Source: Paraphysomonas bandaiensis
Lineage: Eukaryota > Protista > Chrysophyceae
Length of the DNA: 64,000 nt
Reading direction: 5' to 3'
NCBI GenBank assembly: GCA_965644295.1
Contig: CBFFRP010000293.1
Location: forward strand, 1-64,000
Shown: one piece after another, positions 770-60,200 of the stretch
How the letters are laid out: the number at the start of each line of letters is the position of its first letter
Numbering within the stretch: position 1 is the stretch's first letter
Program-made: the position numbers and the translations under genes
The notes under the pieces: model-generated
The model's database searches: none
Seen by the model: the letters and a program-made list of their open reading frames with translations, nothing else
What the model was told of the DNA's origin: nothing

Positions 770-934
770 TTCGCACATTCATTTCATATACATAGCTGCA
801 CCCGGTGTGATACCCCGGGTTTGGTTAAAGTAAATTTACTTCCGAAAGCAGCGAACGAATCTGCAGATTTGGAATTGATATAAAAAAAGATATATATAAT
901 ATTTATTATTACACAATACTGAGGATTCGTTAAC

Positions 935-2509
935 ATGGAACACAATAATCTTCAGGAAATGCTGCAATCTTTTATGCAACAGCAACAACAAATGATACAG
1001 CAGACGTTGCATCAGAATGCACAAGTGGCGAGACAAGAGATGCAGCAAGAAATTCAAAAAATAAACCAGGGATTGCTGGGAAGGTTCGAGCATGTTGACC
1101 AACGAGTGGATGCTTTGATAGAGGAAAAGCAAAAGAGCGATCAGAAAGTGGAGACTGTGCTGGAAAACATCAATGCCAGGCTGGAAACTATGGAAACCAG
1201 AACTGCTATCCTGGAAGGGGAGAAAGAATTAACGGAACAGCAGGACAGGGCGATTACCCATCCGAGCGCATCTAGAGAACGCAAGACTATTTTCATGAAA
1301 GAGGTTGAGGAGACTACACATCTGGCGGAGAGAAGGCAAGTAGTTGTACAAATGCCTACTCCCTCTCATTCGCACATATTCCTAAATTCAATGGACCTGG
1401 CGGACTATGCTCAATTTGTGACCAAGTGGTTTGACTGGCAGGTCAAATATGGTGTGAGACTAGAGCCGGCCCTCATTGTTTCCCAAAGCATTCGAAATCT
1501 ACTAATTTTCAACAATGATATGACGGAATCTCAGTTTCAAGAACTCTCACCTGAACAATTTTGCAAGCTGATGGCTAAAGAAACTCAAGTACTGTCCAAG
1601 CTCGAGTTTTCCAACACGTTAAGGCATGCCCTAAGAGACATCAAAAAGTTAAACTGGGAAAGAGTTAGACCGAATACTCACGAGAGGTTCTTCCAAGGCA
1701 TTCTGAGGCGTAGAGACATATACTTAAGGACCTTCAGGATTATTATGGAGAACAATAGGCAGTATTGCCCAGACCTGGAAGGCAAGGACTTTGGGTTAGC
1801 CCAAGTATTCCTAAATTTGATTGATGATACTTACAACAAGACTGTCTTGGCCGAAATTCCCAAGGTCAAGGCAGGGAACTACTCCAAGGTCGAAGAGTTC
1901 CTGGAAGCTTATGTTAAGAAGGCTAAGGAGCACTATGACACGTCGAAGCGTATTAGACTGGTGCCATACAGTGGTGAAGACTATAGCATGAAAAGTCATG
2001 ACATGCGCAAGAACAAGCAGTACTCTTCACAGGAAGACAAGTACAAAGGACATGAGACAAAAACGTATCCGATGACCAGTGGGGAAGCTAAGCCTTTGCA
2101 CCAGATAAATGACTTCAGTGATGATGAAGATCAGGAGCCACGGGAATCCAGAAATGCAGAGCCAGACTCAGATGACGACTCTGACTATGAGGAAGATCCA
2201 AAGACCACTGCAGAAGGTCATGACACGAATCAGCGCTACGAGGACAAAGTGGACCAGCAGACGGCAAGAGATCAGGACACAGACTACAGAAGGCTACAAG
2301 CCATAGAGGCAACTGCTACTGGGTTGGGATGTGTCAATTTCGCCTTGTATGGGAAGTGCTTTAGAGGAGACCAGTGCAAATATGCCGGAAGTCACAATGA
2401 GAAGTGTGCAAAGGACTGCAGACAGTGGATGATGAAGAAGTTGGCGACGATGGAAAGAGATGGTCCGGGACCTCCTAAGATAATGAAGCGTGATCCAACG
2501 AAATCTTGA
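935..2509 (+). CDS. gag: Gag-like protein (N-terminal Q-rich coiled coil, C-terminal CCCH-type zinc finger)
   Basis: 524-aa ORF between the 5' LTR and pol; contains CVNFALYGKCFRGDQCKYAGSH; ends in TGA in frame with pol. Confidence 0.85.
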   Translation: MEHNNLQEMLQSFMQQQQQMIQQTLHQNAQVARQEMQQEIQKINQGLLGRFEHVDQRVDALIEEKQKSDQKVETVLENINARLETMETRTAILEGEKELTEQQDRAITHPSASRERKTIFMKEVEETTHLAERRQVVVQMPTPSHSHIFLNSMDLADYAQFVTKWFDWQVKYGVRLEPALIVSQSIRNLLIFNNDMTESQFQELSPEQFCKLMAKETQVLSKLEFSNTLRHALRDIKKLNWERVRPNTHERFFQGILRRRDIYLRTFRIIMENNRQYCPDLEGKDFGLAQVFLNLIDDTYNKTVLAEIPKVKAGNYSKVEEFLEAYVKKAKEHYDTSKRIRLVPYSGEDYSMKSHDMRKNKQYSSQEDKYKGHETKTYPMTSGEAKPLHQINDFSDDEDQEPRESRNAEPDSDDDSDYEEDPKTTAEGHDTNQRYEDKVDQQTARDQDTDYRRLQAIEATATGLGCVNFALYGKCFRGDQCKYAGSHNEKCAKDCRQWMMKKLATMERDGPGPPKIMKRDPTKS

Positions 2510-5500: not shown

Positions 5501-6487
5501 CACAGATCAGCAGAGACAAACTATACTCCATTTGAGCTGACTTTTGGGACACCAGACTCAGTCTATAGTGATCTCGCGAAGAAATTCGAGCGTGTCCCTG
5601 AGCACCTATACCTCCAGAAGATGCACGAGAACCTTCACCAGTTACGCAACGCATCTAGACAATACCAAGAGACTCTGATCAAGAAGAGAGTGGAGGGTCC
5701 TAACCAGAGGATGGGTCCCCAGAACAAATTCCAGAAAGGGGATCTGGTCTTGTACGACCCAGGAGTGAGACCGGTGCCGAAGCTGTCTACAAAACGCAAG
5801 GGACCTTTCGAGGTAGTTCACCAGTACAAGAATGACGTAGACTGCAGAAATGTATTAACAGGGGCTATTCACAAATATTCTGTAACTGACCTAGAGTACT
5901 TTGTGGGTTCAAAGGAGGATGCCGTGGAAGCTGCCATCCGAGATCAAGAGCAATTCAGAGTCAAGGTGATTCATGGGTACAAGGGAGATTCCAACCACCG
6001 TACTAGCATGACATTCATTGTGGAGTATGCAGATGGGGACATACTGGAAGTACCATGGAGTAGAGATCTATTCGATTGTCAGGCATATGAAGATTTCTGT
6101 AAATCTAGGAAGTACTTACATCACCTCATCCTGGATCAGAATCAGGTCACTCCTTTCAAGACTCAGCTCAGGAGGGCAGACGTCACAGCAGTGCAAGTAG
6201 GTGATAGAGTGTATGTGGATCTTCGTTTCTTTGGGGATCAGTGGTATCAGAGCTTGGACCTTCCAGACTTTTCTACAAAATCGTATGTGGTGGTCTTCGA
6301 ATACACGCATTGGTACCACAGGACATCTAAAAAGAAGATTAGCGCTCGTTTTCTGCTTAATGGTGCTACTTACGCCCTCGATAATTATCTTGTGTTTGCG
6401 TGGGGCTCAGTCAAGACCTTCGATGAGACCTACATGGTGCTGGTGGATGCAGACATAGCCAAAAGGTATCCCCGCATAGTTGAATAG
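2510..6487 (+). CDS. pol: Pol polyprotein (protease, RT, RNase H, integrase, chromodomain), probably expressed by readthrough of the gag UGA
   Basis: Motifs LFDTGA (PR); FLDIDLTNAFHQ and IFDN (RT); TDAS/TDH/ADTLSR (RH); H-x5-H...C-x2-C, GIDAL/ISDLG/NGCER and GPF (IN); chromodomain-like FRVKVI...FIVEY...VPW. The frame is open from 2510; the ORF track start at 2684 is a GTG. Confidence 0.95.
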   Translation, partial: LLQGLSGPPVVSETISSHSRKACRKALERSFLQACGIGRRLWTAAHTKARIEVVDRKNVEIRRDVETSVLFDTGALCSNYISIRKFRDIEKHMHTKDIIHKRTKVGLADNKTVAWSDIMVRLTLKFEDRSLSAVSCKYSGEFIVLDMKDNEIIIGLPAILGDLWDFFCYSLKGNAERKIRTSVPDAEEEMLQFLASMDNVVHPWSNSMEGEPPEEEMSPLPVQFGEVIKFLGKSREEAIQEFKDLMPEHIAEDFDKATPVRELLLNEGLKVFVPETWTGIRGVEPLKLTFKDTLPQRLKPKARPINPRLWEAAEKEFLRLRGYMYEKSRSPWASCLVVAPKATKPFIRFCGDYVEINKHIHIGNYTIPNIRHQLDRIMGYKVFLDIDLTNAFHQIPLHEETAEKLSIQTPWGQYQPRFMPEGIGPATGVLQETVNALFSDLPWAIVIFDNILLLAMDYQEAYERLKIFIERCIQHNVVLKFAKSWLGFGEVKFFGYRCKHQSFELTEDRKAALLEIPFPESGNRSKKIRSLLGCGVFFAPFVKNYSEKVRHLTDLTKPEFDWSDESKWEHDYRQEFEDFKKDLQEACALHYPDYELPWVIRTDASEIGVGGVLIQIKTHADGSKEEQIIALISKRFSKQAQKWDTIEQEGFAIYYVVKRLAYYLIGKEFLLETDHNNLRWIEASEVPKIIRWRIYLQSFVFKVRHIPGKENVLADTLSRLHLCVAEEDEHEDCHTAEGLCHLCNEDDEFEEEELEYEQRMSTLCNMFDEEEVLGEEIKPTPNHLQLTPTECLDQVHNAQVGHWGERETWRRLNRDFPGHGISQRQVKDYIDRCANCQKSRREMKTRLIPVQRHLKPPTHRTAIGIDALAITPHGRNGETHINVIVNLFTELAFLNPVKGCSAKTLADSVWKYWANFGFTDMIISDLGPDLNSALFKELTDLVGVRHVFSIANKHVNGCERVNKEVGRHLRALVYDTREKDVFDDPTFIPSVQIILNTHRSAETNYTPFELTFGTPDSVYSDLAKKFERVPEHLYLQKMHENLHQLRNASRQYQETLIKKRVEGPNQRMGPQNKFQKGDLVLYDPGVRPVPKLSTKRKGPFEVVHQYKNDVDCRNVLTGAIHKYSVTDLEYFVGSKEDAVEAAIRDQEQFRVKVIHGYKGDSNHRTSMTFIVEYADGDILEVPWSRDLFDCQAYEDFCKSRKYLHHLILDQNQVTPFKTQLRRADVTAVQVGDRVYVDLRFFGDQWYQSLDLPDFSTKSYVVVFEYTHWYHRTSKKKISARFLLNGATYALDNYLVFAWGSVKTFDETYMVLVDADIAKRYPRIVE

Positions 6488-6493
6488 CATAAC

Positions 6494-6512
6494 AGAGAGG
6501 GGGAGGGGGCAG
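6494..6512 (+). promoter_or_regulatory. Polypurine tract of the Gypsy element
   Basis: AGAGAGGGGGAGGGGGCAG immediately before TGTAAC of the 3' LTR. Confidence 0.9.
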
Positions 6513-7258
6513 TGTAACGCCGAGGCGTCAAACTAATCACATACCACAAGACCAGTGAGGTTAATATGCTACAAGGGGGGCTCTAGTGGACTGTGTGTGT
6601 ATGTACAGTCTGCATCTTATCTTCGGATGAAGACACACTTCACTCTCGGATTACAAGTGCCGCTGTTTTTGCTGTATGGGCAATGGAGAGATCTGATTGG
6701 TGTACTCGGGTTATACTGTTTTGTATACTGTATGGAATACAGGCTGTATTGTCTATATGTATATGCTGTATAACGGTGCTGGAATACGGACTGTACTTGG
6801 TGGTGATGTGTTTGCAGAGTGTGTTGTGTGACACGAGGTACATAAGTACGCAATGATGCAGTTATAGGTACATGTAGGGACTATTACTATACAGCTGCTG
6901 TATTATGTATTGCTGCTGAACGCTGATTGGCTAGTCACTGCATTTTTGGTCTGTGGCTGTTGAGTTGGTTTAAGGCTCTTCCTATAGGCCTCTACGTGAA
7001 TCTTCCAGAAGGTGGATATCTCCACAAAATTGGCGAAATGTTGCTGAATTTTCTGCAGAATATTGTTCTTTGTTCTCTGCTGTGTTTCTAGATAGTTCAT
7101 AGAATTAAAATGGTTCTGTATGAGTTGTTTGTCTTCTATGTGCTGTCATTATTATGTTACTAGCCTTGCTGTTCAGATAAGTGCTTGAGGGTGCTCAGGC
7201 AGTTGCAGGGCATAGTAATAAGCATATTTATCTCTACATTATCTATTTTCTTGTTACA
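6513..7258 (+). repeat. Gypsy 3' LTR
   Basis: TGTAAC...GTTACA; direct repeat of 1-769. Shared sequence continues to 7310. Confidence 0.85.
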
Positions 7259-7480
7259 TTCGCACATTCATTTCATATACATAGCTGCACCCGGTGTGAT
7301 ACCCCGGGTTAGGTCAAAACAGAACTAAAGTTCCATCAAAGGTAAAGCACCTTGGGTTTAACTATTAATCATCTATTCGTCTTGGTTTTTCATCAGGATT
7401 TGGGGTGTTTGGAGAATCTATATATGGTCTCCATTAGCGGCTGGGAGTTGCATTAGAAGCTGTGTGTTATACTCTGGTGA

Positions 7481-19985: not shown

Positions 19986-20279
19986 TGTTGAGAAACGCTC
20001 ATTTTACACTAGATCACAGAGAGAATTTGTCGTAAGACTAGATAGATTTATTAATATCGTTTACACGAAGTTGTGATAACCAACACTAACTCATTATAAT
20101 CCCTGCATAATATCCTACATATGCGAACCTCTCGTTACTGAACATATCTTGAACGATCAAACTATTTCAGTTTCTCAATATCATCACAGCATTTGTACAT
20201 CACTATATTTCACTGTATTCTCGTACATTGTCTTGAAGTGACATACTGAATATACTAGAATAAGATCCATATTCTAATA
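19986..20279 (-). repeat. Copia-1 3' LTR
   Basis: Identical to 25202-25495. Preceded on the sense strand by the PPT TTGAGTGGGAG (20280-20290). Confidence 0.95.
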
Positions 20280-20458
20280 CTCCCACTCAATGTAGAATGC
20301 AGTGAGATAAAACAACAGTGATCACAATAATCTGATAATGCTATGACTATCTAGTCCCATAGGTAAAAACAGATGTGAAATCTTTTAAAGATACATATAT
20401 ATCTAGCAGTCAACTAGATATACAGTTATGTGGGATTTTCACCCACTAAAACACACCT

Positions 20459-23400
20459 TTAACCTCTTCGGGGTCGTTTCTTCTGCTGCTCCTCCACACT
20501 GTTAGACACACTCCTCTTAACCCCGGTAATCGTTTTCTCATGACGGCTGAAGATCTTCGTGGACAACGCCTTTGTAAAAATATCGGCCGCCATATCATCC
20601 GTAGATACATGAATCAACTTTGCTGTAGGAAATTTTCCATTAACATGTTCTCTTATCCAGTGATACTTGATGTCAATATGCTTCGACCTCTTATGATACA
20701 CTGGATTCTCTGAAAGATCCTTTGCACTCTTACTATCCATAAAGAATGGAGTCGGCTTCGCTACCAAGAGTCCGAGCTCCTTGAACACCCCCCGAAGCCA
20801 CACCAGTTCTTGCAAAGCCGCATACTCCGCCATATACTCAGATTCCATGCTCGAAGTCGCAACTGTGGTCTGAAGCTTGGACTGCCAGGCCAATGCGCCC
20901 GCACATAAAAACACGATGTATCCCGTTGTGGATCGCCGAGTCATCCTATCCCCAGCCCAGTCTGAATCACTGAATACATGTAAATCAAACTCACTCCCAC
21001 TGAATCTGATTCCCTTATCAACTGTACCACGTAAATATTTCAACAAATGAATAGCTAATCTGCAAGTCGCATATGTTGGAGAAGTACTAAATCGAGCCAA
21101 TAACCCCACAGCGTAAGCCAAATCAGGTCTAGTGTGAATCGCCAAATGCAACACCGCTCCAATAATTCCTCTATACGGAAATGATTCGACCCACTGCTTC
21201 TGCTCCTCCGTCAGCTCACGTTGCTCTGCCAACAAGTCCTGAACATTGGTAGGTAGTGGAGTCTCCTTATTCTTACTGCTCTTTCCCATAAACGAACTGA
21301 ATTTCTTGACAATATTCTTGGCATATTCCGATTGATCTAACATGTACCAGTCCTCGCCTCTCGTGATTCTGATATTCAGAAACCGTTTGCACACACCCAG
21401 ATCATGCATTTCAAACGTTTCGCAGAACCTACGTTTAACACTTTCTAAGTAGGTGAGATCAGCAGATGCAATGATAATATCATCAACATATATCAGCAAT
21501 AAGTGCAATTGACCATTACTCCATCGCATATACAAGCATGTATCTAAAATGCAAGCAGTAAAATGTAACGATTTGATAAACTTGTCAATATGCTTGTTCC
21601 ACTGCCTCGGTGATGACCGCAAACCATATAAGGCCTTGATCAATTGAAAACACCACCCCGCTGGCAACTCTTCATCAGGTGGAGGTGCCATATACACATC
21701 CTCTTCAAGATCGGCATAACAAAACGCTGATGATACGTCCAACTGATGTACATGCATATGAAACATAAAGGCAATTGCAAGAACCAGTCGAATGGTTATT
21801 CCTTTGACCACTGGAGCAAACGTGGACTGCTCCTCCTCCGTTTTTTCTTGTAGATTCCCTAATGCAACCAGCCGCGCCTTATACTTGACTACGTTCCCCA
21901 GAAGGTCTCTCTTCACCGTGTGAACATACTTTGCTCGCACCAACTTCACTCCTCGTGGAGTCCGCACAATCTTTAAGACACGTCTCTTCAGTAGTGAGGT
22001 CTTCTCCACCTTCCGAGCTTCTCTCCACTTCATGTACTGTGGAGATCTCTCTGCTTCAGCATAGGAGTCTGGTGTCTTAAAATCATCATGTTGAAACTCT
22101 GCATGTTTAAAGTTAACAGTGCATGCATCTGGCACCTCAACCATATTTATTTCTCCTAACACCGATGCGTTCGCCAACCTACGCTGTAGCCGTTTCCGCC
22201 GTACACGACCATCACCATCTAGTTCAATAGGTCGTCTAGTAGTTATATACGAACCCATACCTTGCTCATCCTGAGCCCGCAAATCTTGCGGTGTGGGAGG
22301 AGCCCCGCTCGCATCCCCAGACCCATGGTCTGTCAAGGTCTGCAACCTCACGACTGTCTGTTGACAGGTTGGGTCGGGACTCTCCTGGAACCCTCCAGGT
22401 CTTCCCTGGTCCAGCTCCCTGGCTGGCGTAGTACTCAGGGCGTCCCCCTTTCCTATGTACCCGGTATTCCCGGGGGTTTCTGCAGTCATACGCACCACGT
22501 CTTCGACGTGTATAGGCACCCGGTGCTCTATATGCTCGCGACCTGCAGTAACAAGTGAACGGTATGCTACAATCACACCCTTACGTTCTACAACTCTTGT
22601 TGTCTTGTACAGAAGTCCGTCCTCATCATCAATATGATACGTTCCTTCTAAGCTGACATAGTCGGATGCAAGCTTGGGTCTAGCGGCCTCCCGCACTCGA
22701 AGAGCATCAATCTCTGCGAAATACTTCTCTGATCGTGATGGCGTTGACTCATCAGTCAATATATGGACTGTAGTCACCACCTTGTTTGATTCAGGAAGAT
22801 ATACATGGTATCCTACCTTCTCATCAGAGTAACCCATTAAATATCCAACTAGAGCCTTATCCTCCCAATCCTTTCGTCGATCCGCCTTCGGTGAAAGAAC
22901 ATAAGTTCGACACCCCCATACCCTAAGATATCTCAAATTTGGAGGCTCACCCGTTAGAAACTCTATAGGAGACATATACCCTTTATCTGTTTTCGTTGGC
23001 AATCGAATCAAAATATATCTGGCTGCCATGTATGCATCCAGCCAAAATTGCGGTGGCAGTCCAGATTGGATTAGCATTGCAAGAGTCATCTCTCCAGCAG
23101 TTCTGAACTTCCTCTCCTCTATGGCATTCATTTCTGGAGAGTCTGTTGAGCTCCACGTATGTTGATAGCACTCCTGTGTCCTAAGATACTGACGCAGCTC
23201 TTCACTGATTAACTCTCTTGCACCATCTGCATGATAGTGCTCCATCTTGAGCTTGTACCTTCTAACATCTCCTCTAAATAGCTCTTTGAAGACTTCTAAG
23301 ATCGCTTCCCCAGTTCTGTGGACTAAACCCGTCGCCCAGAACATTTTGCTGGCATGATGCGTTATCTTTAACACATACCTCTCACCTCCTCTAGCAGGAC

Positions 23401-24304
23401 AATTTAAGTACACAGCGATATCTGCTGAAAAATTCGGTCTAACGGAATTCTCGTCCTTCGTTCGGAAGCTGACTCGGGTTATCTTAGACCTGGCACACAC
23501 ATCACACAAACACTGATTTTTGTGTACCTTGGCTGTGAGGTGTTTCCGTTTCAACCCTGTACCCATGATGAGCATCCTCTTATGTGCCTCTACTAAAGCA
23601 TGTTTGTTGAAGTGACCCGCTCTCCGATGCAGCAACTCCAGCTCGTCCTCACCAGTCCTATCGCTAAGATTTACTTCACAATTACTCGGTGTAGACACAT
23701 CTGGAAGCTCCAACAGCTGCTGAGTTGGAACTGCAGTCATTCCATTCTTCATGGGTCCCTCCAGTACCAGTTCACCAGTATTACAGTCATAAATTTGGAT
23801 CCCATACCACACCGTGAATCGATAGCCCATTTCGTTCAGCTTACGTCCGGAGCACAGGCATCGATTGATCTGATCTGAAATTTCTATGTCTCTCCATGCT
23901 CCACGGGAACCCACACTTGTGATATGAATCTCTGATCCCTTCTTAGAGCCGTTTATCACCTTTGATGTATTCATATGAGTGTCAAGCATGGTCACATCAT
24001 TCATCAAGAACATTGATGATGAACAGCAGGTGTCAATATATGTATAATGCATGTCATCATTTACACTACATATATTCGTTTCATGTATATTGCATGACAA
24101 TTTCATAACATCCTCGATCATATTTGCTTCATCTTCATCAGAGAATTCTGCTGGTTCTCCACGCCGTATATTCTCTACTGTCAGTAGCCTTTTGTCCGGC
24201 TTCCTACCATGATTCTTCCCTTTCTCTCCTCTTCTAGAATGCTTTTTCTTCGTCGTTGGACAATCAGCAGCAAGATGTTCCAGAGAGACTTGCAATTTCT
24301 GCAT
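20459..24304 (-). CDS. pol: Copia pol portion (PR, IN, RT, RNase H)
   Basis: YIDTCCS (PR); HRRAGH...CDVC and SADI/HADG/IEER (IN); KARLVA and LIYVDD (RT); FSDSDWAGD, RSKHIDIKYH and ADIFTK (RH). Confidence 0.95.
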   Translation of the reverse strand: MQKLQVSLEHLAADCPTTKKKHSRRGEKGKNHGRKPDKRLLTVENIRRGEPAEFSDEDEANMIEDVMKLSCNIHETNICSVNDDMHYTYIDTCCSSSMFLMNDVTMLDTHMNTSKVINGSKKGSEIHITSVGSRGAWRDIEISDQINRCLCSGRKLNEMGYRFTVWYGIQIYDCNTGELVLEGPMKNGMTAVPTQQLLELPDVSTPSNCEVNLSDRTGEDELELLHRRAGHFNKHALVEAHKRMLIMGTGLKRKHLTAKVHKNQCLCDVCARSKITRVSFRTKDENSVRPNFSADIAVYLNCPARGGERYVLKITHHASKMFWATGLVHRTGEAILEVFKELFRGDVRRYKLKMEHYHADGARELISEELRQYLRTQECYQHTWSSTDSPEMNAIEERKFRTAGEMTLAMLIQSGLPPQFWLDAYMAARYILIRLPTKTDKGYMSPIEFLTGEPPNLRYLRVWGCRTYVLSPKADRRKDWEDKALVGYLMGYSDEKVGYHVYLPESNKVVTTVHILTDESTPSRSEKYFAEIDALRVREAARPKLASDYVSLEGTYHIDDEDGLLYKTTRVVERKGVIVAYRSLVTAGREHIEHRVPIHVEDVVRMTAETPGNTGYIGKGDALSTTPARELDQGRPGGFQESPDPTCQQTVVRLQTLTDHGSGDASGAPPTPQDLRAQDEQGMGSYITTRRPIELDGDGRVRRKRLQRRLANASVLGEINMVEVPDACTVNFKHAEFQHDDFKTPDSYAEAERSPQYMKWREARKVEKTSLLKRRVLKIVRTPRGVKLVRAKYVHTVKRDLLGNVVKYKARLVALGNLQEKTEEEQSTFAPVVKGITIRLVLAIAFMFHMHVHQLDVSSAFCYADLEEDVYMAPPPDEELPAGWCFQLIKALYGLRSSPRQWNKHIDKFIKSLHFTACILDTCLYMRWSNGQLHLLLIYVDDIIIASADLTYLESVKRRFCETFEMHDLGVCKRFLNIRITRGEDWYMLDQSEYAKNIVKKFSSFMGKSSKNKETPLPTNVQDLLAEQRELTEEQKQWVESFPYRGIIGAVLHLAIHTRPDLAYAVGLLARFSTSPTYATCRLAIHLLKYLRGTVDKGIRFSGSEFDLHVFSDSDWAGDRMTRRSTTGYIVFLCAGALAWQSKLQTTVATSSMESEYMAEYAALQELVWLRGVFKELGLLVAKPTPFFMDSKSAKDLSENPVYHKRSKHIDIKYHWIREHVNGKFPTAKLIHVSTDDMAADIFTKALSTKIFSRHEKTITGVKRSVSNSVEEQQKKRPRRG

Positions 24305-25218
24305 CCCGTGTATTCAGCACTTCCAGGACGCTGCCCTGATATCTCTCCATCCTTCTTCCTCTGCTTCCTCCTGCACTGTTCAGTTGAATGGCTATGAGGA
24401 ATTCCTTCTTTCCTGCAATATCTACAGTTGCCCTTCTTACGCTTATCCCGTTCCGTTCGAGACCGTTTGCTCTTTTCAATGAAATTCAGCTCCTCCACCT
24501 TCTTGCGTTTCCGCTCTAACGCAATCCTTCCAGGAATGGTATCATCATACCGTTCTATCTTCCTTGATAATGTTGCATAATCAACATCATCAGGCATCAA
24601 ATACAAAGCAACATTCAGAGGAGCATATTCTTCATTCAACAGACCTTCTCGTAACCGTGTTATTTTTGAGAGCTCCGATATGTCCTGCTGCTGCTCCTGT
24701 AGCTCTTTCAGCAGTATTTCAAACCGTATTATATAGTCCTTCGCAGTCTCCTCCGGACGCATACGGAAAGAGCCATACTGAGTCAACAGTTCACTGATCT
24801 TGTTTTGCTTCCCTCCAGCAAAGCACTTCTTCAACTCATCAATCATAATATGCGCCTTAAACCTGTTGCTTCCTTTTCCATCAGCCTTGAACCCTTTATG
24901 TAGAAGATGGAATTTCTGAAGCGCCTTCGAAGATGTTTGCACTGCCTCTCTGCAGTACGAATACGCTATGGCATTCGCCTTCCAGTACTTCTTCACAGCC
25001 TGTCTGTAAGACTTTTCCTCCATTAACGTGAGTGGCTGTTCCCCAAAGTCGCTTTCCTTCGGTGGTGGCTCCACCGCTACTTCACTTTGCTCTTTCCTCA
25101 TGAGGAATGTTTCGAAGTCCTCAATCCATTGTTCAACATTGCTCTCATTAAACTGTGGCACTACTCCTCTATCCTCCTTCTCTCCTCCTCGCTCGCTACC
25201 ATGTTGAGAAACGCTCAT
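24181..25218 (-). CDS. gag: Copia gag portion, separated from pol by an apparent 2-bp frameshift
   Basis: Gag-like ETAKDYIIRF motif and zinc knuckles. The second knuckle, CRNCKSL/EHLAADC, is split between frames. Confidence 0.85.
   Translation of the reverse strand: MSVSQHGSERGGEKEDRGVVPQFNESNVEQWIEDFETFLMRKEQSEVAVEPPPKESDFGEQPLTLMEEKSYRQAVKKYWKANAIAYSYCREAVQTSSKALQKFHLLHKGFKADGKGSNRFKAHIMIDELKKCFAGGKQNKISELLTQYGSFRMRPEETAKDYIIRFEILLKELQEQQQDISELSKITRLREGLLNEEYAPLNVALYLMPDDVDYATLSRKIERYDDTIPGRIALERKRKKVEELNFIEKSKRSRTERDKRKKGNCRYCRKEGIPHSHSTEQCRRKQRKKDGEISGQRPGSAEYTGCRNCKSLWNILLLIVQRRRKSILEEERKGRIMVGSRTKGY
25190..25201 (-). promoter_or_regulatory. Primer binding site, initiator tRNA-Met type
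   Basis: TGGTAGCGAGCG directly after the 5' LTR. TGGTAGC is the complement of the ...GCUACCA end typical of tRNA-iMet. Confidence 0.8.
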
Positions 25219-25495
25219 TTTACACTAGATCACAGAGAGAATTTGTCGTAAGACTAGATAGATTTATTAATATCGTTTACACGAAGTTGTGATAACCAAC
25301 ACTAACTCATTATAATCCCTGCATAATATCCTACATATGCGAACCTCTCGTTACTGAACATATCTTGAACGATCAAACTATTTCAGTTTCTCAATATCAT
25401 CACAGCATTTGTACATCACTATATTTCACTGTATTCTCGTACATTGTCTTGAAGTGACATACTGAATATACTAGAATAAGATCCATATTCTAATA
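25202..25495 (-). repeat. Copia-1 5' LTR
   Basis: 294 bp; sense-strand termini TATTAG...CTCAACA. Confidence 0.95.
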
Positions 25496-28700: not shown

Positions 28701-29169
28701 AACATAACCTGTTTTGCAGAAATATCCCTCCTTGCACTCTTCGATCACTGACGGCGTCACACAGAAGTGCTAAGAAATGAGTGAAAACGTCAGCAAATGA
28801 GATAACCACTTCAAAAAGGCATACCCCTTTGCAGCAATAAGACGGAGTTAACGTATTCTCGGGGCAATAGAATCCTGCAGCAGAGATCATACCATGAGGC
28901 CATTGGTCTGTACATTACACACCAGGAGTACAGGGGCACTGCAGCTCTCCATCGCTCGACCGTACAGTGCAGTTAGCAGCTGTGATAGCCGCCATATTGT
29001 CCTGAATCTGGTCCGAATTGTAGCCAGGACAGTAATATCCAGCAGGGCAGGTGAGATTTCCATCTGTCTGCTGACACTTGCAGGAGGATGAGGTAGCTCC
29101 TGGACACACCACTGTCACAGCTGCCGATAGGCGCAGACACACCAGAGAAATAACAACAAATACTTTCAT
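25767..29169 (-). CDS. ABCG half-transporter with Cys-rich extracellular N-terminus (ADP1/ABCG24-28-like; multi-exon)
   Basis: Signal peptide and CPAGYYCP-type repeats; Walker A GPSGAG/KTT; GFVPQED; SGGQRKRV; FLDEPTSGLD; IHQP; C-terminal TMD. Confidence 0.92.
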
Positions 29170-29250
29170 TGAGATTCTACCAATATCAAGACAATGGAGT
29201 GAATGACTCTTGTGCAATCTACCCTTGCAAAGGATCTTTCCACAAGAAAG

Positions 29251-29817
29251 TATGTATGCATGTATGTATGTATGTATGTATGTATGTATGTATGTATGTA
29301 TGTATGTATGTATGTATGTATGTATGTATGTATGTATGTATGTATGTATGTATGTATGTATGTATGTATGTATGTATGTATGTATGTATGTATGTATGTA
29401 TGTATGTATGTATGTATGTATGTATGTATGTATGTATGTATGTATGTATGTATGTATGTATGTATGTATGTATGTATGTATGTATGTATGTAGGTATGTA
29501 GGTATGTAGGTATGTATGTATGTATGTATGTATGTATGTATGTATGTATGTATGTATGTATGTATGTATGTATGTATGTATGTATGTATGTATGTATGTA
29601 TGTATGTATGTATGTATGTATGTATGTATGTATGTATGTATGTATGTATGTATGTATGTATGTATGTATGTATGTATGTATGTATGTATGTATGTATGTA
29701 TGTATGTATGTATGTATGTATGTATGTATGTATGTATGTATGTATGTATGTATGTATGTATGTATGTAGGTATGTATGTATGTATGTATGTATGTATGTA
29801 TGTAGGTATGTATGTAT
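29251..29817. repeat. (TATG)n microsatellite, ~570 bp
   Basis: About 140 near-perfect TATG units with a few TAGG variants. Confidence 0.99.
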
Positions 29818-29878
29818 TGGATCGTATCAGTTTAAGGTTTGGTATAGTTGTTCATCAAGTTGTTTGGTCTTTTGTTTA

Positions 29879-31220
29879 ATGCCACCAAAGGAAAAAGTCG
29901 TGGCAGCTGCTAGTGCACTGAAGAAAACTGCATCTGCAATTCCTCGCACCCCTATTGTCCCGGCTGATGTCCCTCCTAACGGGTGTAAGATAGTGTGCTG
30001 GAATGTCGCGGGGTTGAGAGGGACACTTAAGAATTCACCTGATATATTCAATAGTATAGTGGCCCAGCACGACCCGCATATAATCTGCTTGCAAGAGACT
30101 AAAATACAGACCTCTCATGAGGGGGATTTCGATCATATTCTTCCCCAGTATACGAAATACTGGGCATCATCCACAGCGAAGAAGGGATACGCCGGCACTG
30201 TAAATTAATAATTTATTTTGTGGTAGTCGTATATAATTTTTTTCGTCAGGCTGTGTTTGTGAAGACGTCCCAGAGCTTGCACGATAAGACTGTAAGTGGC
30301 AATGGTAAGAGCCAATCCACCCTTACGTCCATGTGGAAGAAAGGCACGAAAAAGAGAAAACTTGAGAACGCAGATGATTCAAAAGCTGATAATGGGGAAG
30401 AAAAGAGTGCGGGTATTGACTCCCTTTCTGTCCCCCTCGCAACAGATCTGCAAGTCCAGGAGGTTACGTATGAGTTACCTGATAGTCGTTTCTCAGGTAC
30501 CATTTTCAGATATACCTCATGGAAATAGTCGACAATTACATTGTGTGCAGGTGAAGGTCGAACTATCACTGTGGAATTTCCTCGATTTTTTCTGGTCAAC
30601 TGCTATGTCCCTAACTCTGGCCAGAATCTTGAACGACTGGACTACCGAACCACGGAATGGTAAATCTCTTGTAACGTCATTTTTATGTAGTTGACTCTGT
30701 ACTCTCTTCTCAGGGATCCGTACATGTACGAGTACCTGAAGTCCCTAGAGACCCGGAAGCCGGTTATATTTACTGGTGACCTTAATGTCGCACATCTTGA
30801 TTTGGATATCCATAACCCTACTGCCAAGCATATTGTGAAGCAGGCCGGCTTAACTCCACAAGAGAGAGCGTCATTTGGCTCGCTCCTTGCAACGGGGTTC
30901 CAAGACTCCCTTCGTTTTTACTACCCAAGTATGCTGTTCAAGTTAGATATTCTTGCATGTGCTCATGACTGATAGGTCACGAAGGACAATTTACGTATTG
31001 GTCAATACGCACAAACGCCCGCCCGGTTAATAAAGGACTCCGTCTTGATTATTTCATGTGCTCTAAATCTATGTTTCCACCCATTCCTGATGCAGGGATA
31101 GAAGAACTGGACAGAATGACGGTGCCCGTCCCGGGTGTTGTAGACTCATACATAATCCACGAAGGCACGGAGGGGTGCAGCGATCATTGCCCTGTCGCGC
31201 TTGTTTTGAAGCTACAGTGA
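29879..31220 (+). CDS. AP endonuclease / exodeoxyribonuclease III family (multi-exon)
   Basis: WNVAGLR, LQETK, GEGR, YVPNSG, GDLNVAH, FTYWS, RLDYF and SDHCP motifs across spliced exons. Confidence 0.93.
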
Positions 31221-53237: not shown

Positions 53238-53407
53238 CGTTGGTGGGGGGTGTCAATAGATTGTGGTGCAGGTCCAGGGATGCGACAGACTCTCAGGCTC
53301 GTATGAGTGCAGTGCAGTGAAGTGCTGCACATGAGAGGAAGAACAACAGCATACAGCACGTATACCATGGTATACCATGCATGCACTGTATATACATGTA
53401 AATCTAC

Positions 53408-53762
53408 CGAAGAGAAAAAATGTACGGATCACTCTACTGTCGTCAGTACTACAGGCTGGCAATGACACGGATCCAATACTCCCGTTGTTCTTTATCGGTC
53501 TACACTACAGGTAGGCAAAGAAACAAGTCTCTTGACAGATACTACAGAAATTGTTAGTGACAAGAAATTATGAGTCTCCCCTACAGTCATAATACTGTTC
53601 TCGTGTACTCATTCATATTTCTGTGTACATTCTAGACCGTATCCTACAGAGCTACAAATGCACTAAACTGAAAAATACAACCATCAGGGGAACAAAAATA
53701 ACGACAGACGTTAACTCTTGTCACTCGCACTTTCTCGTACCAACGTATCACTTTGCTCTGCG
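53408..53762 (-). repeat. Copia-2 3' LTR
   Basis: Direct repeat of 58152-58506. Preceded on the sense strand by a short PPT-like AGGGGTG. The ORF stop lies inside it. Confidence 0.95.
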
Positions 53763-56700
53763 CACCCCTGTGGCATGTGTATTGTCTCCCACGATACCAC
53801 ATGACATATACCTGTACAGAGTACCTTGAAGGGGCTTTGTCAATGCATCTGCAAGCATCATCTTCGTCGGTAAGTGCTGCAAACGAATATTTCCTGCCTT
53901 GTAATTCTCTCTGATGATCTCGCGCCTCACACGTAGATATTTCGATCGATACTTGCCACCACCTTTCATCACAAGCGATAAAGTTGACGTGTTGTCTTGA
54001 AGTACCACAGGTGCGCCAATATCGTATCCTTGACCCTTGATGAAATCTGCACACTGTATCACCTGCATCATCATATCTGACAGTCCCACCAATTCAGATT
54101 CTGTCGAGTCTTTCGTGACCATCCTTTGCTTCGAGGATTTGCACAGAACTGTCGCGCCACCTACCTTAACCACGAGTCCCGTATGTCCTTTGCCATCCTC
54201 ATGACATGCGAATGCTGAATCGATATATCCAGTGACAGCCAGCTCCTTCCCCACACACAATACCAAGTTCTGTTCCCTAGTCGCATTGAGGTAGCGGGCT
54301 ACTCTGTGAAGCTTTTCCATATCTGCCTGTGTAGGACTCTTCACTTTTGTACTCAGGTAAGCGATTGCAAGCAATATATCCGGTCTCACTCTCTTAGCCA
54401 GGTATAATAATTGTGCCACCATCTTATGGAACTTTCTCCTCTCATTCTTGCTGATCAATTTAGTCGTAGTGTTCTTAAATAACGCACCAGTAGCTGGTGA
54501 TGCAGCATTCCCTGTTACACCGTGTTCCTGTAGAAAATTCTCTATGTATGACTTCATAGACACCGTGATCTCGCCGTTCTCTGCTATTATTATATGCATG
54601 CCTAGGTAGGATAGATTTTTGTCATCGCTATACTTTACTTCCACAAAACGCTCCCTGAGCTCTTGTACAAGCTTCTTGGTATCTTCCTCCTTGTGTGACA
54701 TAACCAGTAGGTCGTCGACAAACACTACCACTGTGCATGTGTGTCCATCAACCACTCTGTTCATTACACATGGGTCTACCTCATTATGTTTGAACCCAAT
54801 CAATCGCAGGAATCCAGTTATAGTTTCATACCACAATCTCGCGCTCTGTATGCATCCATATAATGCCTTGTCTAGTCGTACATACAGCTTGCCGCTCTCG
54901 TCCACGTAGGGCTTAACTTCCGGCGCTACCTTAGATAGTATCGTAGTTAGCATAGGCTCTAGCTCCATGATGACTTCCTCTCCTGTCATCTCCGCATTTA
55001 AATACGCGCCTCCAATGTCCACCGTTGCTATATGCCGCTTCTCCTTGGCAGCAATTGCTAAGCACATCATGATCGATTGCATCGCTGCTGTTGGCGACGA
55101 TGTGTCTGTATACAGCTTCCTGTCTTGCTGTGCCCCATTCGCCACTAGTCGAGCTTTTACTTTCTCAAAGCGACCCATGCCATCGTACTTTGTCTTGAGG
55201 AACATTAGCGATCGGATTGTCTTCTTCAATTGCTTCTTTGACAACTGCTTCTTCTGCACCGGACTCATAGCCTTCTTCTCATGCAATAGTTGCTTTAGCT
55301 CTGCAACAATGGCTTTATATGCTGTAGGTCCATACTCCTGCAATCCTTTCATAACACTTGTATGGTAGGCTCTATACTCCACCGGCTTAGACGACTGGAT
55401 TCCAGAATCATCTCTCACTTGCTCTCCATGATCCTCACCGATGCTATTGTTTACCGGCACATTACGCTCACCGTCGTCATTGTCGTCACCGTCGTCACCA
55501 ACAAGCTGTGGAACATCTTCATCTTCATTCTCTGCTGAGTCGACTACATCTTCATGACTCGTTCGCGACTCTAGTTGTCGTTCGCCCTTCGCTGATTCTT
55601 CCAAGTAAGTCGAGTTATGATCCTCTTCATTAGACTCATGTCCCTCTGGCAGGTTCATCTTATCCTCCTCTCTATCCAGCCCATCTTTCGCATCAGTCTT
55701 CTGTAGCAATGGTGTCATATCGTCTCTTCCACTGCTATTATCACACGTCTTTGCTGCATTATTCATTGCGTCTATTATGAGCTGTGTTGTTCGCATCTTT
55801 ACCCAGTTAGTTCTTCTAATTCTCTTCTGTGTCTTGATATTGAAGAATACCCAACTACCGTTAGCATTGCCAGTAGGATACAATGCTATGCATGGCTCCG
55901 TACGATCCTGCTCGGCATTATTACTCCTCACCTTAGGATTGTAGCACTCCACGTAGTCTCCAAATGCCACATCTAGTTCTTTTCTGTAGTTCGGCTTTCT
56001 CCCAGTGAAAGCTACTCGTGGAGCGACGATGGAATGACTTGTCGATGGTCTTCTCAGATTCATGCGACTGTTCGCATATTTCACTAAGTCTTCCACGTTC
56101 GCATTAGGCAATTTCCACGGTAGACCTGCATTCACACTTCTTATGATCTCCTTCAGCCTTCTTATCTTGCTATCGACCCTATCCATATGATCTCCAGCAC
56201 CGCTGATGTCTATCTCCACCCCTGTAATCTTTCCTCGAAGTGGTTGAAATCCCGGCTGTGGATCCAGGTATGCTATCCTCGGTGTAAATCCATGGCTGCG
56301 CAATAGACTCACTTGCTCTTGCAGAGCTAGTCCAAGATCGTCTGTTCTCTCACTCGGTAGTGCCGCCACCAAAGTTAGTCCAAGAGGCTCCGACAACGTG
56401 ATCATGAAGGGTTGCTTCCTCACATAGAATAAGTCCGTATATAACCGCTGACTCTTTTGCTGCGACGCCTTCAATTCAATATCCACGTGTTGTCTGCGTA
56501 CCTTCTTTTTGGTGTGTTTTCCTCTGATAGCCTCACACGGTTTGCCATATATATCGAACGACCTTCTGATATCATTTGCCGTCAGCTGCACCCCTGTGAT
56601 GTTGCCGTCACTCACGAGGTTTATCGCATCTTGTTCTGAGTCAAAACCAGAATTGCGTATTAGTTCTCGAGCTTCTCTCGCCCTAGCAACTTCGCCTCTT

Positions 56701-58136
56701 GTGTATTTTTGTTCTTCCATGCTTGTTGATGTAACATTAACATTGCCTTCTGCCCAGTCTCTCATATCAGCTACATACATTTTGTTCCGCCTTCTGAACA
56801 CTAGTTCTTTGTTTTGTAGATACACAGTGTACGATACACCCGGTTCATAAGCCACTGGATACATATCTTCCACATCGGCCTGGCATAATACACTCACACG
56901 TAGGTCTTCAGCCGTCTTACACGTGAAGAAATGATCCAGCTCTCCCACGTTCGGTAGTTCTACGGCGTGTCCAGATAGACCGGCTACCGTGCACTTTCTG
57001 CTTGCTGGCCTCACGTCCTTCAGCAACCACGGGTGTACAACTGATACGTCCGCCTGGTTGTCTAGAAGCACCTCGTACCACTCAAAACGCTCACCGCTCG
57101 ATGCATATGCGTTCATTGTTGTGACCGAGCACTGTTTTTCCTCCGGCTCTACATTATCGGGACAATCACTCAGTTTGTGTCCGGGCTCTCCACAACCCCA
57201 GCACACCATGGGTTTCCTCGGCCTATTACCGCGACGTCTCGGCTCCTGGTCATCATTGGCCTTCTGTTTTCTGTCCATTTCACTCGCACGCCTTTGCTTG
57301 GTGGATTGTTCCTTCTGGCTGACAAATGCTACTCCACCATTCGATTTTGCTCCTCTCCTCGGGGTAAGATACTTCGATGCTTTAGTGTAGATATCGTTGA
57401 CGTGCTCAGGTGGCTTCTGCGTGCCCATCATCAGATCATTTAGATAATTTGTCTTGAATTCCCCATAACGGGCATCATCCAATCCCCTAAAGAAATCCAT
57501 GGCTATGTCCTCATCATCCATTCTCGGATTGTCGGCGTCATTGTACGCATCTAGTAGGAAATCGAATCTCTCCTTGTAGCCCACTATGCTCTCGAAGGGA
57601 CCTTGTTTTGCGTCTTGATATTTCTTCCTAGTCTCTGCACGGACGACCGCTTCGACATTTGAGCTCGTTGCTGACTTATGAGTCTCCTTTACAGCCAACC
57701 ACAGCAGCAGAGGGTCCTTGGTCGAGTTGATTTTGTCGTATTCTGGTGTGAGCTTTATTGCGTCAATTGATTCATTGCTCAGATGATTGTAGATGAATGC
57801 ATAGAAAGCAGTCCGATTCGCCTTCATTTCATTAATCAATTTCGCCCTTGCCTTCCTGGCATCCTTCATATCTTCAGCGTTAAATCCGTGGGGGTCGTTT
57901 TTTAAGTTATATTCTGCAGGGTTTACACGCGGCGGTTCATAGTACTTGTCCAGTTCGATTAGCCTTGCCAGGTCTCCATATCTCTCCATTCCCTCGGCCA
58001 CAAGCTTCTGCTTGAACGTCGCCAAGTTGGTATTGGCACCATATTTCAGTATTGGCACAGACGTGGACGCACTGTTGCTCGCCGAACCCCTAGCCCTTTG
58101 TTCAAATCGCTTCTGAAACTTCTTGTTGGATCTCAT
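53748..58136 (-). CDS. Gag-Pol polyprotein (CCHC knuckle, PR, IN, RT, RNase H)
   Basis: CWGCGEPGHKLSDC; LLDNQA; YTDLF/YLDPQ/RVDSKIR; KARLVANG, DIGGAYL, KALYG and FVDD; YIDSAF, STESE, QDN and ADALTKPL. Confidence 0.96.
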   Translation of the reverse strand: MRSNKKFQKRFEQRARGSASNSASTSVPILKYGANTNLATFKQKLVAEGMERYGDLARLIELDKYYEPPRVNPAEYNLKNDPHGFNAEDMKDARKARAKLINEMKANRTAFYAFIYNHLSNESIDAIKLTPEYDKINSTKDPLLLWLAVKETHKSATSSNVEAVVRAETRKKYQDAKQGPFESIVGYKERFDFLLDAYNDADNPRMDDEDIAMDFFRGLDDARYGEFKTNYLNDLMMGTQKPPEHVNDIYTKASKYLTPRRGAKSNGGVAFVSQKEQSTKQRRASEMDRKQKANDDQEPRRRGNRPRKPMVCWGCGEPGHKLSDCPDNVEPEEKQCSVTTMNAYASSGERFEWYEVLLDNQADVSVVHPWLLKDVRPASRKCTVAGLSGHAVELPNVGELDHFFTCKTAEDLRVSVLCQADVEDMYPVAYEPGVSYTVYLQNKELVFRRRNKMYVADMRDWAEGNVNVTSTSMEEQKYTRGEVARAREARELIRNSGFDSEQDAINLVSDGNITGVQLTANDIRRSFDIYGKPCEAIRGKHTKKKVRRQHVDIELKASQQKSQRLYTDLFYVRKQPFMITLSEPLGLTLVAALPSERTDDLGLALQEQVSLLRSHGFTPRIAYLDPQPGFQPLRGKITGVEIDISGAGDHMDRVDSKIRRLKEIIRSVNAGLPWKLPNANVEDLVKYANSRMNLRRPSTSHSIVAPRVAFTGRKPNYRKELDVAFGDYVECYNPKVRSNNAEQDRTEPCIALYPTGNANGSWVFFNIKTQKRIRRTNWVKMRTTQLIIDAMNNAAKTCDNSSGRDDMTPLLQKTDAKDGLDREEDKMNLPEGHESNEEDHNSTYLEESAKGERQLESRTSHEDVVDSAENEDEDVPQLVGDDGDDNDDGERNVPVNNSIGEDHGEQVRDDSGIQSSKPVEYRAYHTSVMKGLQEYGPTAYKAIVAELKQLLHEKKAMSPVQKKQLSKKQLKKTIRSLMFLKTKYDGMGRFEKVKARLVANGAQQDRKLYTDTSSPTAAMQSIMMCLAIAAKEKRHIATVDIGGAYLNAEMTGEEVIMELEPMLTTILSKVAPEVKPYVDESGKLYVRLDKALYGCIQSARLWYETITGFLRLIGFKHNEVDPCVMNRVVDGHTCTVVVFVDDLLVMSHKEEDTKKLVQELRERFVEVKYSDDKNLSYLGMHIIIAENGEITVSMKSYIENFLQEHGVTGNAASPATGALFKNTTTKLISKNERRKFHKMVAQLLYLAKRVRPDILLAIAYLSTKVKSPTQADMEKLHRVARYLNATREQNLVLCVGKELAVTGYIDSAFACHEDGKGHTGLVVKVGGATVLCKSSKQRMVTKDSTESELVGLSDMMMQVIQCADFIKGQGYDIGAPVVLQDNTSTLSLVMKGGGKYRSKYLRVRREIIRENYKAGNIRLQHLPTKMMLADALTKPLQGTLYRYMSCGIVGDNTHATGVRRAK

Positions 58137-58138
58137 TC

Positions 58139-58151
58139 TAATTTCTTGTCA
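58139..58151 (-). promoter_or_regulatory. Putative self-priming primer binding site
   Basis: TGACAAGAAATTA directly after the 5' LTR. With the last LTR base it is perfectly complementary to 58301-58314 within the LTR. No TGG start. Confidence 0.65.
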
Positions 58152-58506
58152 CGAAGAGAAAAAATGTACGGATCACTCTACTGTCGTCAGTACTACAGGC
58201 TGGCAATGACACGGATCCAATACTCCCGTTGTTCTTTATCGGTCTACACTACAGGTAGGCAAAGAAACAAGTCTCTTGACAGATACTACAGAAATTGTTA
58301 GTGACAAGAAATTATGAGTCTCCCCTACAGTCATAATACTGTTCTCGTGTACTCATTCATATTTCTGTGTACATTCTAGACCGTATCCTACAGAGCTACA
58401 AATGCACTAAACTGAATAATACAACCATCAGGGGAACAAAAATAACGACAGACGTTAACTCTTGTCACTCGCACTTTCTCGTACCAACGTATCACTTTGC
58501 TCTGCG
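58152..58506 (-). repeat. Copia-2 5' LTR
   Basis: Sense-strand termini CGCAGAG...CTCTTCG. Confidence 0.95.
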
Positions 58507-60200
58507 TCTACACACGGACAGGAGCAGCAGGTGTGTGTATACCGGTACTGTATTCGTGGTATACTGCTGCATACTGTACCGGATGGTGTGTGACTGACGT
58601 GTGATGGCCCGTTGTATGCTCTCATCCATCGCGGGTCTGGAGGAGGTGGGTGCAAGCTGAGGTCTGGAAAATGACTCTGGCATATTATTTGTTGGGACAT
58701 TCAAAAATATGTGTATTATCATATGGCACACACTCCATAGTGGAAGTGTCACTTTATCAGGTTTCACAAACAAATGCATGATATATACTGCATCGTACTA
58801 TGTACTACAGGAATCCATGTGATGCGATTGTTGTATGGCGTAGGTAGACTTACTGATACATTTTACTTTTGTGTCAGTGGCTAGCTTAACGCTATCTGTA
58901 TAAAGATAATCAGTATGGATTGGTCATTAAGTGTCAAGGTTAATGGGATTGTATCACTTCTAGACGTTGAATTTTGAAATATGTATCTATCAACATCACT
59001 CGTCCAGTTATGAATTCCGCAGCTAAGCGAACAACAATTTACGATTTAAATATGTGTCGCTTTTTGATTGAGTTACATCACACTGCATTTTGGTACTTTA
59101 CTAACGAATATGTCATCTTGGAGGATCACGAAAATTTATACAATTGGTATACAGTTGCGGTCACATCGGAGAGTATCAAGGTGTGAAGTCATTCGAATAA
59201 ACGTATTAAGGTGTTGAAGTAATTCGAATAAACGTATTTTTCTTGTCTCAGAAGCTCTAAGGACAATACATACTTTCATTATTATGAGGAAAATTTTATT
59301 CAACGTAGTCAATTTGGTTGTAATACTTAGGCACATTATTTTGGTGGAATAACCTAGTCAAAGTAATAAATGACTTAACCTAGTCAATTTTGGTATTCAA
59401 ACTAGATGTTCTTATATCCATTGATTACATACTGTGACTGCTAAAGATACCTATATCACCACACAATATATTAGTGGCTTACAGAGCATCAAATCAAACA
59501 TTCAATCATAACAGTGAACTCATATATACATATCTACTTAACACAGGAGTATATATGTCTATCCAGCCTATTTATAGGTTATAAGTATATAGCGTTGGGT
59601 CCCCTGTGAGTGTTATGGGGAAGAAGGGTCCATGAAGCTGTGGATATAACTCATAACTCACACTATGATCTGCAGGACATCTCGAGATCTAAATATGCTA
59701 TGAGTGGTAGCGCTCATCTTCCTTCACTTCTCTAATGATTGCATTGGCTTCCAGGAACGCATAAATCGCCATGTTTTTAGACCAAGAAATATAAGAAGGA
59801 GGTTTTCAGGACACAAAGCAAGATCATATATCATAAAAACAGCATCATGAAGTGGACTGTAGAGCTGCAGCAGAACATCAGTATCATGAGGTGTGTTTCG
59901 TGCAAAGTCATACCGTATCATAAGGAGTGTGTTGTGCAGTGGAGCCATTAGTCATACTACAATTCGAAAACAATAAGTTATAACAACACCTCTAGGTTGC
60001 TAGGTCGACGTCTATCGATATTTGATGGACGCCCTATAATTTATAGAGAACAATTCCACTTTACCAAAAGGCATCTATAGATGTAATAAATGGTAAGCTA
60101 TTGATAATAAAACATTCCCTTAGCGCAGGGAAATAATTATTAATTCAAATAACGCAAGCAGCTCCAATATCCATTATGAAAATTTATCGATATGCTAACA

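Follow-up and report, generated by a model that had tools for sequence, protein, structure and literature searches.

A predicted self-priming site in a Copia-order LTR retrotransposon, kept by compensatory change among its aquatic relatives

How does an LTR retrotransposon start its minus-strand DNA when the sequence behind its 5' LTR does not look like a binding site for a tRNA? This question is raised by an element on the minus strand of the 64,000-nucleotide stretch of DNA that was analysed here (the window), which is transposon-rich eukaryotic DNA that also contains another Copia element, one of the Gypsy type and ordinary host genes. A sequence-only reading had proposed that the element primes on its own RNA, in the manner of Tf1 from Schizosaccharomyces pombe. 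Self-priming frees an LTR retrotransposon from its dependence on host tRNAs. It has so far been demonstrated only in Tf1-type Gypsy elements, and predicted in one plant Copia lineage. The parts of the element are as follows, from its 5' flank to its 3' flank.

58507..58511, minus strand: upstream copy of the target-site duplication, GTAGA, directly 5' of the 5' LTR.
58152..58506, minus strand: 5' LTR, 355 nt, with the ends CGCAGAG...CTCTTCG and 354/355 identity to the 3' LTR.
58333..58338, minus strand: TATTAT, from its sequence a possible TATA-like box, 24 nt upstream of the LTR-internal arm.
58315..58317, minus strand: TCA, an initiator-like motif adjoining the start of the arm, conserved in relatives and resembling the motif in PMC4686930.
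58301..58314, minus strand: TAATTTCTTGTCAC, arm within the LTR at the start of R, which would serve as the self-primer; exact complement of the primer-binding arm, covarying in relatives.
58153..58300, minus strand: remaining R-U5, 148 nt, enclosed by the duplex (fold and alignment).
58139..58152, minus strand: primer-binding arm GTGACAAGAAATTA, whose first base is the last base of the LTR and which ends 2 nt before the gag ATG.
53748..58136, minus strand: gag-pol ORF, single and intact, 1462 aa, with its stop codon inside the 3' LTR.
57159..57206, minus strand: CCHC zinc knuckle of Gag, residues 311-326 (PF00098, E 0.0009-0.0035, just under the gathering score).
55737..56729, minus strand: integrase-like region, residues 470-800 (AlphaFold model and Foldseek; no Pfam match).
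54504..55223, minus strand: Copia-type reverse transcriptase RVT_2, residues 972-1211 (PF07727, E 4.9e-29, 102 bits against a cut-off of 31.6).
53763..53771, minus strand: ACAGGGGTG, directly next to the 3' LTR and within the coding sequence, probably the plus-strand primer site (polypurine type).
53408..53762, minus strand: 3' LTR, 355 nt, with a second copy of the arm at 53570-53557 (LTR alignment).
53403..53407, minus strand: downstream copy of the target-site duplication, GTAGA, directly 3' of the 3' LTR.

By its sequence, this is an intact LTR retrotransposon of the Copia order that appears to be functional and to have been inserted recently. The sole difference between the two LTRs is at 58417 in the 5' LTR, corresponding to 53673 in the 3' LTR, and the LTRs are flanked by a perfect 5-bp duplication, GTAGA, at 58511-58507 and 53407-53403. 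The gag-pol ORF extends 14 nt into the 3' LTR, where it stops at a TGA. With the ORF running into the 3' LTR and the primer-binding arm ending just before the ATG, there is almost no non-coding sequence outside the LTRs. The motif ACAGGGGTG is likely to be the plus-strand primer site, and the same motif is found at the matching place in five of the related loci described below (L001, L002, L083, L084 and L085).

The assignment to the Copia order, which the sequence-only reading had made, is borne out by the RVT_2 domain and by the fold of the region upstream of it. A Pfam profile search of the integrase region gave no family match even at E=5. Residues 470-800 were modelled with AlphaFold on the basis of 22 relatives (pLDDT 83), and Foldseek matched this model to the catalytic-core and C-terminal domains of retroviral integrases (E about 1e-7, probability 1.0). 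Because this integrase fold lies upstream of the reverse transcriptase (residues 972-1211), the domain order is PR-IN-RT, that of Copia elements. The Gypsy-type domain order and reverse transcriptase of the Tf1/sushi group were not found: the reverse transcriptase is of the RVT_2 type and the integrase precedes it. Two further observations on the integrase region were made by eye: no HHCC zinc-finger motif is evident, and in the alignment D99 and D156 are invariant and E194 nearly so, which could be the DDE triad. An Rfam search of the element gave nothing relevant.

The termini of Copia-order LTRs are usually TG...CA, and these termini are not strictly defining for the order. In the window element they are absent. 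Its LTRs have the ends CGCAGAG...CTCTTCG, an imperfect 7-nt terminal inverted repeat, with the CG pairs at 58505-58506/58152-58153 and 53761-53762/53408-53409. The same CG...CG termini are found in L001 and L087, and the sub-clade's consensus ends, CGYAGAG...CTCTNCG, also in L004; the LTRs of a more distant relative, L067, end in TGTTG...CAACA. LTR finders that require TG and CA would place the boundaries of CG...CG elements wrongly. In addition, the 355-nt LTR (58152-58506, minus strand) contains five copies of the hexamer CTGTAG, with roughly 0.1 expected. The sites are largely kept in L001 (4512-4867), as four CTGTAG and one TGTAG. Three of the five sites lie in R-U5, and they may represent a UGUA-type polyadenylation element or a factor-binding element.

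At the junction of the 5' LTR and the interior, the minus strand reads ...CTCTTCG/TGACAAGAAATTAGA-ATG. The sequence-only reading was right that neither a TGG nor a tRNA-type site follows the LTR, and the perfect 14-nt complement that it described between this place and the LTR interior was found again by reading the sequence and by a pattern search. The 14-mer GTGACAAGAAATTA (58152-58139) starts with the final base of the 5' LTR and extends 13 bases beyond it, and is the exact reverse complement of TAATTTCTTGTCAC (58314-58301) within the same LTR. The only other exact copy of TAATTTCTTGTCAC in the 64 kb is the one in the 3' LTR, at 53570-53557. Also as described earlier, CTCA directly precedes the arm, and TATTAT is found 24 nt upstream of 58314 (58338-58333). 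The chance of finding a perfect 14-mer complement to a fixed site in a 355-nt LTR is about 342/4^14, or roughly 1e-6. Control windows taken from the ORF and compared with the same target gave a longest match of 10-11 nt; the control windows reached 10-12 nt at most, and shuffled controls gave 8-12 nt with one single 15. Both the minimum-energy and the centroid structure predicted for the leader contain the 14-bp helix, although the stability of the whole leader is unremarkable (z -0.4). A near-copy in U3, GTGACAAGAGTTAA (58468-58455, minus strand; three mismatches to the primer-site arm), was considered as a second site and rejected. Such a copy occurs in 2 of 31 elements with 0.9 expected, and is probably due to chance.

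The window itself offers an internal contrast. The second Copia element, at about 19986-25495 on the minus strand, is unrelated to the first (about 21% amino acid identity). It has LTRs of roughly 294 nt, a CACGT target duplication and a gag ATG inside the 5' LTR. Right after its LTR end, ...CTCAACA, stands TGGTAGCGAGCG, a site of the tRNA-iMet type, and by its sequence this would be the classical site for the 3' end of that tRNA, set against the element that appears to prime itself. The Ty3/Gypsy element, at about 25-7318 on the plus strand, has LTRs of roughly 800 nt. Its gag ORF spans 935-2509, its pol ORF (2684-6487) carries RVT_1, RNase H and integrase H2C2 domains, and the sequence after its 5' LTR begins TGGTTAAAG. 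A long tandem array with an 8-nt period is found at 29110-29700 (plus strand), counted in 72 overlapping registers, and overlaps a 230-aa ORF at 29516-30208.

If the complementarity serves priming, it should be kept by relatives even where the sequence is not, and the sequence-only reading had proposed a search for compensatory change between the two 14-mers. The outcome was strongly positive. A protein search returned hundreds of relatives, almost all of them metagenome proteins, with the nearest in Tara Oceans and other aquatic metagenomes. From ENA and Logan contigs, 80 JGI metagenome contigs and five further JGI contigs, 92 loci were gathered (labelled L001 and so on). As an example, in L001, with 70% amino acid identity to the window element, GTGATAGAAAATTATG after the LTR pairs with CATAATTTTCTATCAC inside the LTR, and the three differences of its arms from those of the window element are all compensated. 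In L002 (61% identity), GTAAGAGGAAATTATG after the LTR pairs with CATAATTTCCTCTTAC inside it. In both loci, wherever one arm departs from the window element, the other shows the matching change. Between the window element and L001, R-U5 is about 90% conserved (over the first ~110 nt of 148), and U3 much less.

The survey covered the 35 loci whose intact ORFs are 1350 aa or longer, some of these loci having less than 30% protein identity. The search for the primer site was extended beyond the 25-33 nt before the ATG, which recovered elements with sites further upstream. Perfect arm pairs of 11-17 nt were found in 31 of the 35 loci, and pairs of at least 13 nt in 27. Of the four loci without a pair of at least 11 nt, L011 and L037 are on contigs that lack a complete LTR, L010 has a pair of 10 nt and L054 has none. 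Six additional loci also have arm pairs (L086, L087, L088, L089, L090 and L091). In the relatives with pairs, a conserved U5 end rich in pyrimidines (...TTYCAAC or ...TTCTAC) always comes immediately before one arm, and the second arm is found within the LTR, 46-172 nt further upstream. When 29 leaders were folded, the minimum-energy structure of 28 had the helix complete or nearly so. The pairing is present on every major branch of the protein tree (FastTree, midpoint root), including relatives with less than 30% identity.

The arms themselves vary greatly. Between elements, the primer-site arms have a mean identity of 0.43 over their first 11 nt, and three to four types of Watson-Crick pair are seen at each of the 11 anchored positions in 31 non-redundant elements. 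These pairs were counted by anchoring on the arms and not on a single leader alignment, as the leaders are too divergent and, for many contigs, the two arms are found on separate pieces. Within its own element an arm pairs at 11 of 11 positions; across elements the mean is 4.7 of 11, with 2 of 930 pairs reaching 10, and matches of at least 12 nt occur in 10 of 1190 cross-element comparisons. Judged on sequence, this compensatory conservation is about as strong as such evidence can be. In one sub-clade (L060, L073, L077, L081 and L082), the primer site lies 230-460 nt upstream of the first ATG of the long ORF, which points to a long leader or to an additional ORF upstream. It is also worth noting that L077 (period 5865) and L086 (NCBI GCA_040384245.1, period 4662) are arranged in tandem, head to tail, with a single LTR shared between neighbouring copies.

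The two ends of the duplex carry further information. At its outer end, TCA is found within one base of the start of the LTR arm in 20 of 28 non-redundant elements, where the background is 5% (binomial P about 4e-20); at the opposite end of the arm it is found in 4 of 28. Kadono et al. (2015, PMC4686930) proposed TCAH+1W as an initiator-like motif of diatoms. The window element reads TCA/TA here, and in the numbering of TCAH+1W position +1 would be 58314, the first base of the arm, while the classical CA+1 would give 58315. There is otherwise no obvious reason for the complementarity to stop at an initiator, so that the conserved TCA is good, if indirect, support for a predicted transcription start near 58314-58315.

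The inner limit of the duplex is a conserved C of U5, opposite a pyrimidine, in 25 of 31 elements (the ...TTYCAAC terminus). LTR ends obtained by self-BLAST are unreliable on collapsed contigs, and they were judged only at loci with two LTRs and real flanks, namely the window element, L001, L087, L067 and L004, with L076 ambiguous. The duplex includes exactly the last base of the LTR in the window element, L001, L087 (CG...CG LTR, duplication TTGAA) and L067 (TG...CA LTR, duplication CTGTA). It is possible that the primer is cut one base short of the end of the duplex, after ...UUGUCA, as the sequence-only reading had it. It is also possible that the last nucleotide of the primer is retained or copied into the LTR end, and that processing by the integrase then sets the terminus.

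Some information on transcripts comes from two relatives, L089 and L092, both from JGI sample 3300016919. They are cDNA-like contigs with poly(A); they have identical ends and come from one sample, and are not independent. Their protein falls into the same 90% cluster as an MMETSP peptide of Chaetoceros sp. GSL56 and has 39% identity to the window protein. The 3' ends read ...GCTCA/CTTTTTAAAGTAAAC/ATAATTTGTGAAC and then AAAAAA, the 5' ends read AAC-ATAATTTGTGAAC-ATTCG..., and the primer-site arm GTTTACTTTAAAAAG comes after ...CTTTCAAC. As the poly(A) of L089 begins 13 nt after the copy of the arm, the arm lies precisely at the border of U3 and R, and R can be at most about 28 nt long. The 5' end of L089 is 12 nt inside the arm, 3 nt before its end. 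This agrees with transcription from the arm's first base, as assemblies usually lose the beginning of a transcript, but is no proof of it. In this relative, transcription may instead start just downstream of the arm, which would place the arm in U3, and this is the main remaining weakness of the self-priming reading. The other contigs of about 5 kb were also considered as cDNAs and rejected: nearly all are assemblies with collapsed LTRs and k-mer terminal overlaps of 27-127 nt, and poly(A) is found only in L089 and L092.

The best explanation of these observations, and a likely one, is that the element's own RNA primes its minus-strand DNA as in Tf1. Transcription would start in the 5' LTR at or next to TCA/T, at about 58314-58315. 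The first ~14 nt of the RNA would fold back over the 148 nt of R-U5 and pair with 58152-58139, and the element's RNase H would cleave beside ...GUCA(C), where the duplex has its inner end. The freed 3'-OH would then be extended through U5 and the short remaining part of R to give the strong-stop DNA, which would transfer to the short R present at the RNA's 3' end, and the arm would be regenerated from the copy in the 3' LTR, as in Tf1. The proposal allows for pairing within one RNA as well as between co-packaged RNAs.

Other explanations have to be weighed against this one. The inverted repeat could be due to chance, in favour of which only the A/T richness of the arms can be named, or a host tRNA or tRNA fragment could bind the primer site TGACAAGAAATTA (TGACAAGAAATTAG), with the complement in the LTR being incidental. 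A search of the 64-kb window with ARAGORN found no tRNA genes; the case against a tRNA is drawn from the site itself and from the relatives. Since the arms differ between elements and always pair within their own element, both chance and a conserved cellular primer such as a tRNA can be set aside. For chance, the expectation of about 1e-6 and the shorter matches in the controls had already made a poor case, and with pairing that recurs with differing sequences in more than 30 relatives it becomes extremely improbable. A tRNA primer is hardly more credible and we consider it very unlikely, as the site is A/T-rich without a TGG and differs in nearly every relative, yet always matches the LTR of its own element.

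Two readings that accept the duplex as real are somewhat better placed, and still unlikely. The duplex could be a structural element of the leader that closes R-U5, with a role in packaging, dimerisation or translation of gag, while something else serves as the primer. That the leader RNA is clearly under selection follows from R-U5 being far more conserved than U3, and the pairing reaches the start codon or nearly so, running into the ATG in L001 and L002 and ending 2 nt before it in the window element. However, the inner end of the duplex is always at the terminus of U5, even in the five loci with an ATG 200-460 nt downstream (L060, L073, L077, L081 and L082), and because of this the duplex can be said to track the priming site and not the start codon. 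No other conserved primer-binding sequence was found after the LTR in any relative, so a structural role without priming seems to us a minor possibility. Alternatively, the element could prime itself from the 3' copy of the arm, in the same or a co-packaged RNA (by cyclisation or in trans), with transcription starting just after the arm. This would fit L089, which starts only 3 nt before the end of its arm and where the arm is followed by a CATAATTT motif like the one at the start of the arm in the window element. Against it, the conserved TCA marks the 5' boundary of the arm (20/28) far more often than the 3' boundary (4/28). Transcriptome assemblies commonly lack the first ~10 nt of a transcript. 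Cutting the 3' copy would also be expected to sever R-poly(A), complicating strand transfer, and we regard priming from the 3' copy as improbable to about the same degree as the structural role.

With self-priming from the 5' arm as the preferred reading, the element can be set beside systems that are already known. It resembles Tf1 and the sushi group, which are Ty3/Gypsy chromoviruses, in having no tRNA site, in a primer site after the 5' LTR that complements the start of its own transcript (as predicted here), and in a fold-back that encloses R-U5. It differs from them in its order, being a Copia element whose reverse transcriptase is of the RVT_2 type and comes after the integrase. The primer duplex of Tf1 is 11 bp long, compared with 14 bp here and 11-17 bp in the relatives. 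Unlike in Tf1, the duplex here includes the last base of the LTR; the RNase H cut and the transcription start are both predicted in this element. In Tf1, perfect complementarity between the primer site and the first bases of the mRNA is required, as summarised in PMC5445492. By analogy, then, the element is one that would work like Tf1 outside the Tf1/sushi group.

Within the Copia order, the sequence-only reading knew of no described self-priming element, and this was overstated. Neumann et al. (2019, PMC6317226) predicted self-priming for the TAR lineage of plant Ty1/copia elements, asking for at least 10 bp that are complementary to a region of the 5' LTR and start 0-5 bp after the LTR. An earlier proposal of self-priming for Houba and Osr-1 is cited there as Capy 2005. 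The window element is like TAR (Houba, Osr-1) in its order, in the sequence criterion and in that self-priming is likewise predicted only; going by sequence, self-priming in the Copia order is so far a prediction, here as in TAR. The hosts of TAR are land plants, whereas the elements described here are found in aquatic metagenomes and a diatom transcriptome. Set beside TAR by description, the present elements also differ in an integrase that Pfam does not see and, in this sub-clade, in the CG...CG ends of the LTRs. Fungal GalEa elements are another case of Copia elements without a tRNA-type primer-binding site. They have a 'Conserved Hairpin Site' instead, and no complementary LTR sequence was found for them (PMC5445492), in contrast to the perfect and covarying complement here. 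The CoDi elements (Maumus et al. 2009, PMC2806351) are Copia-like elements of diatoms that are abundant in ocean metagenomes, and one homologue of the window element carries a Chaetoceros label. The paper that defines CoDi does not discuss priming, and full-text literature searches found no description of self-priming in diatom Copia elements.

The lineage of the element is that of a marine protist, most likely a diatom, given the one Chaetoceros-labelled homologue and the marine and freshwater sources of the relatives. The sequence comparisons strongly support a new and large lineage of putatively self-priming elements within Copia, in a eukaryotic supergroup other than that of TAR, with the CG...CG ends of the LTRs (in the sub-clade), the Pfam-invisible integrase and the very short R as its unusual features. 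We lean, with some reserve, towards a wider reading, in which self-priming is ancestral and near-universal in a deep-branching Copia lineage of aquatic protists (diatom-type) that is marked by its highly divergent integrase and by a U5 end of the form ...TTYCAAC-R. If this is true, it would be the third self-priming group, after Tf1/sushi (experimental) and plant TAR (predicted), and among Copia elements the one with the best comparative support.

No new principle is involved, but the finding is solid and can serve both annotation and experimental work in diatoms. For annotation, the rule to be drawn is that tools which look for tRNA-type sites and TG...CA ends miss such elements or place their boundaries wrongly. 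For experiments, transformable diatoms offer a tractable system for a first test of self-priming in Copia elements. For the biology of the family, compensatory change has kept the required pairing in a large and very diverse Copia group of diatoms and other aquatic protists, and this bears on the question of whether self-priming is ancestral in LTR retroelements or has evolved repeatedly: if the reading is correct, it either arose more than once or is old.
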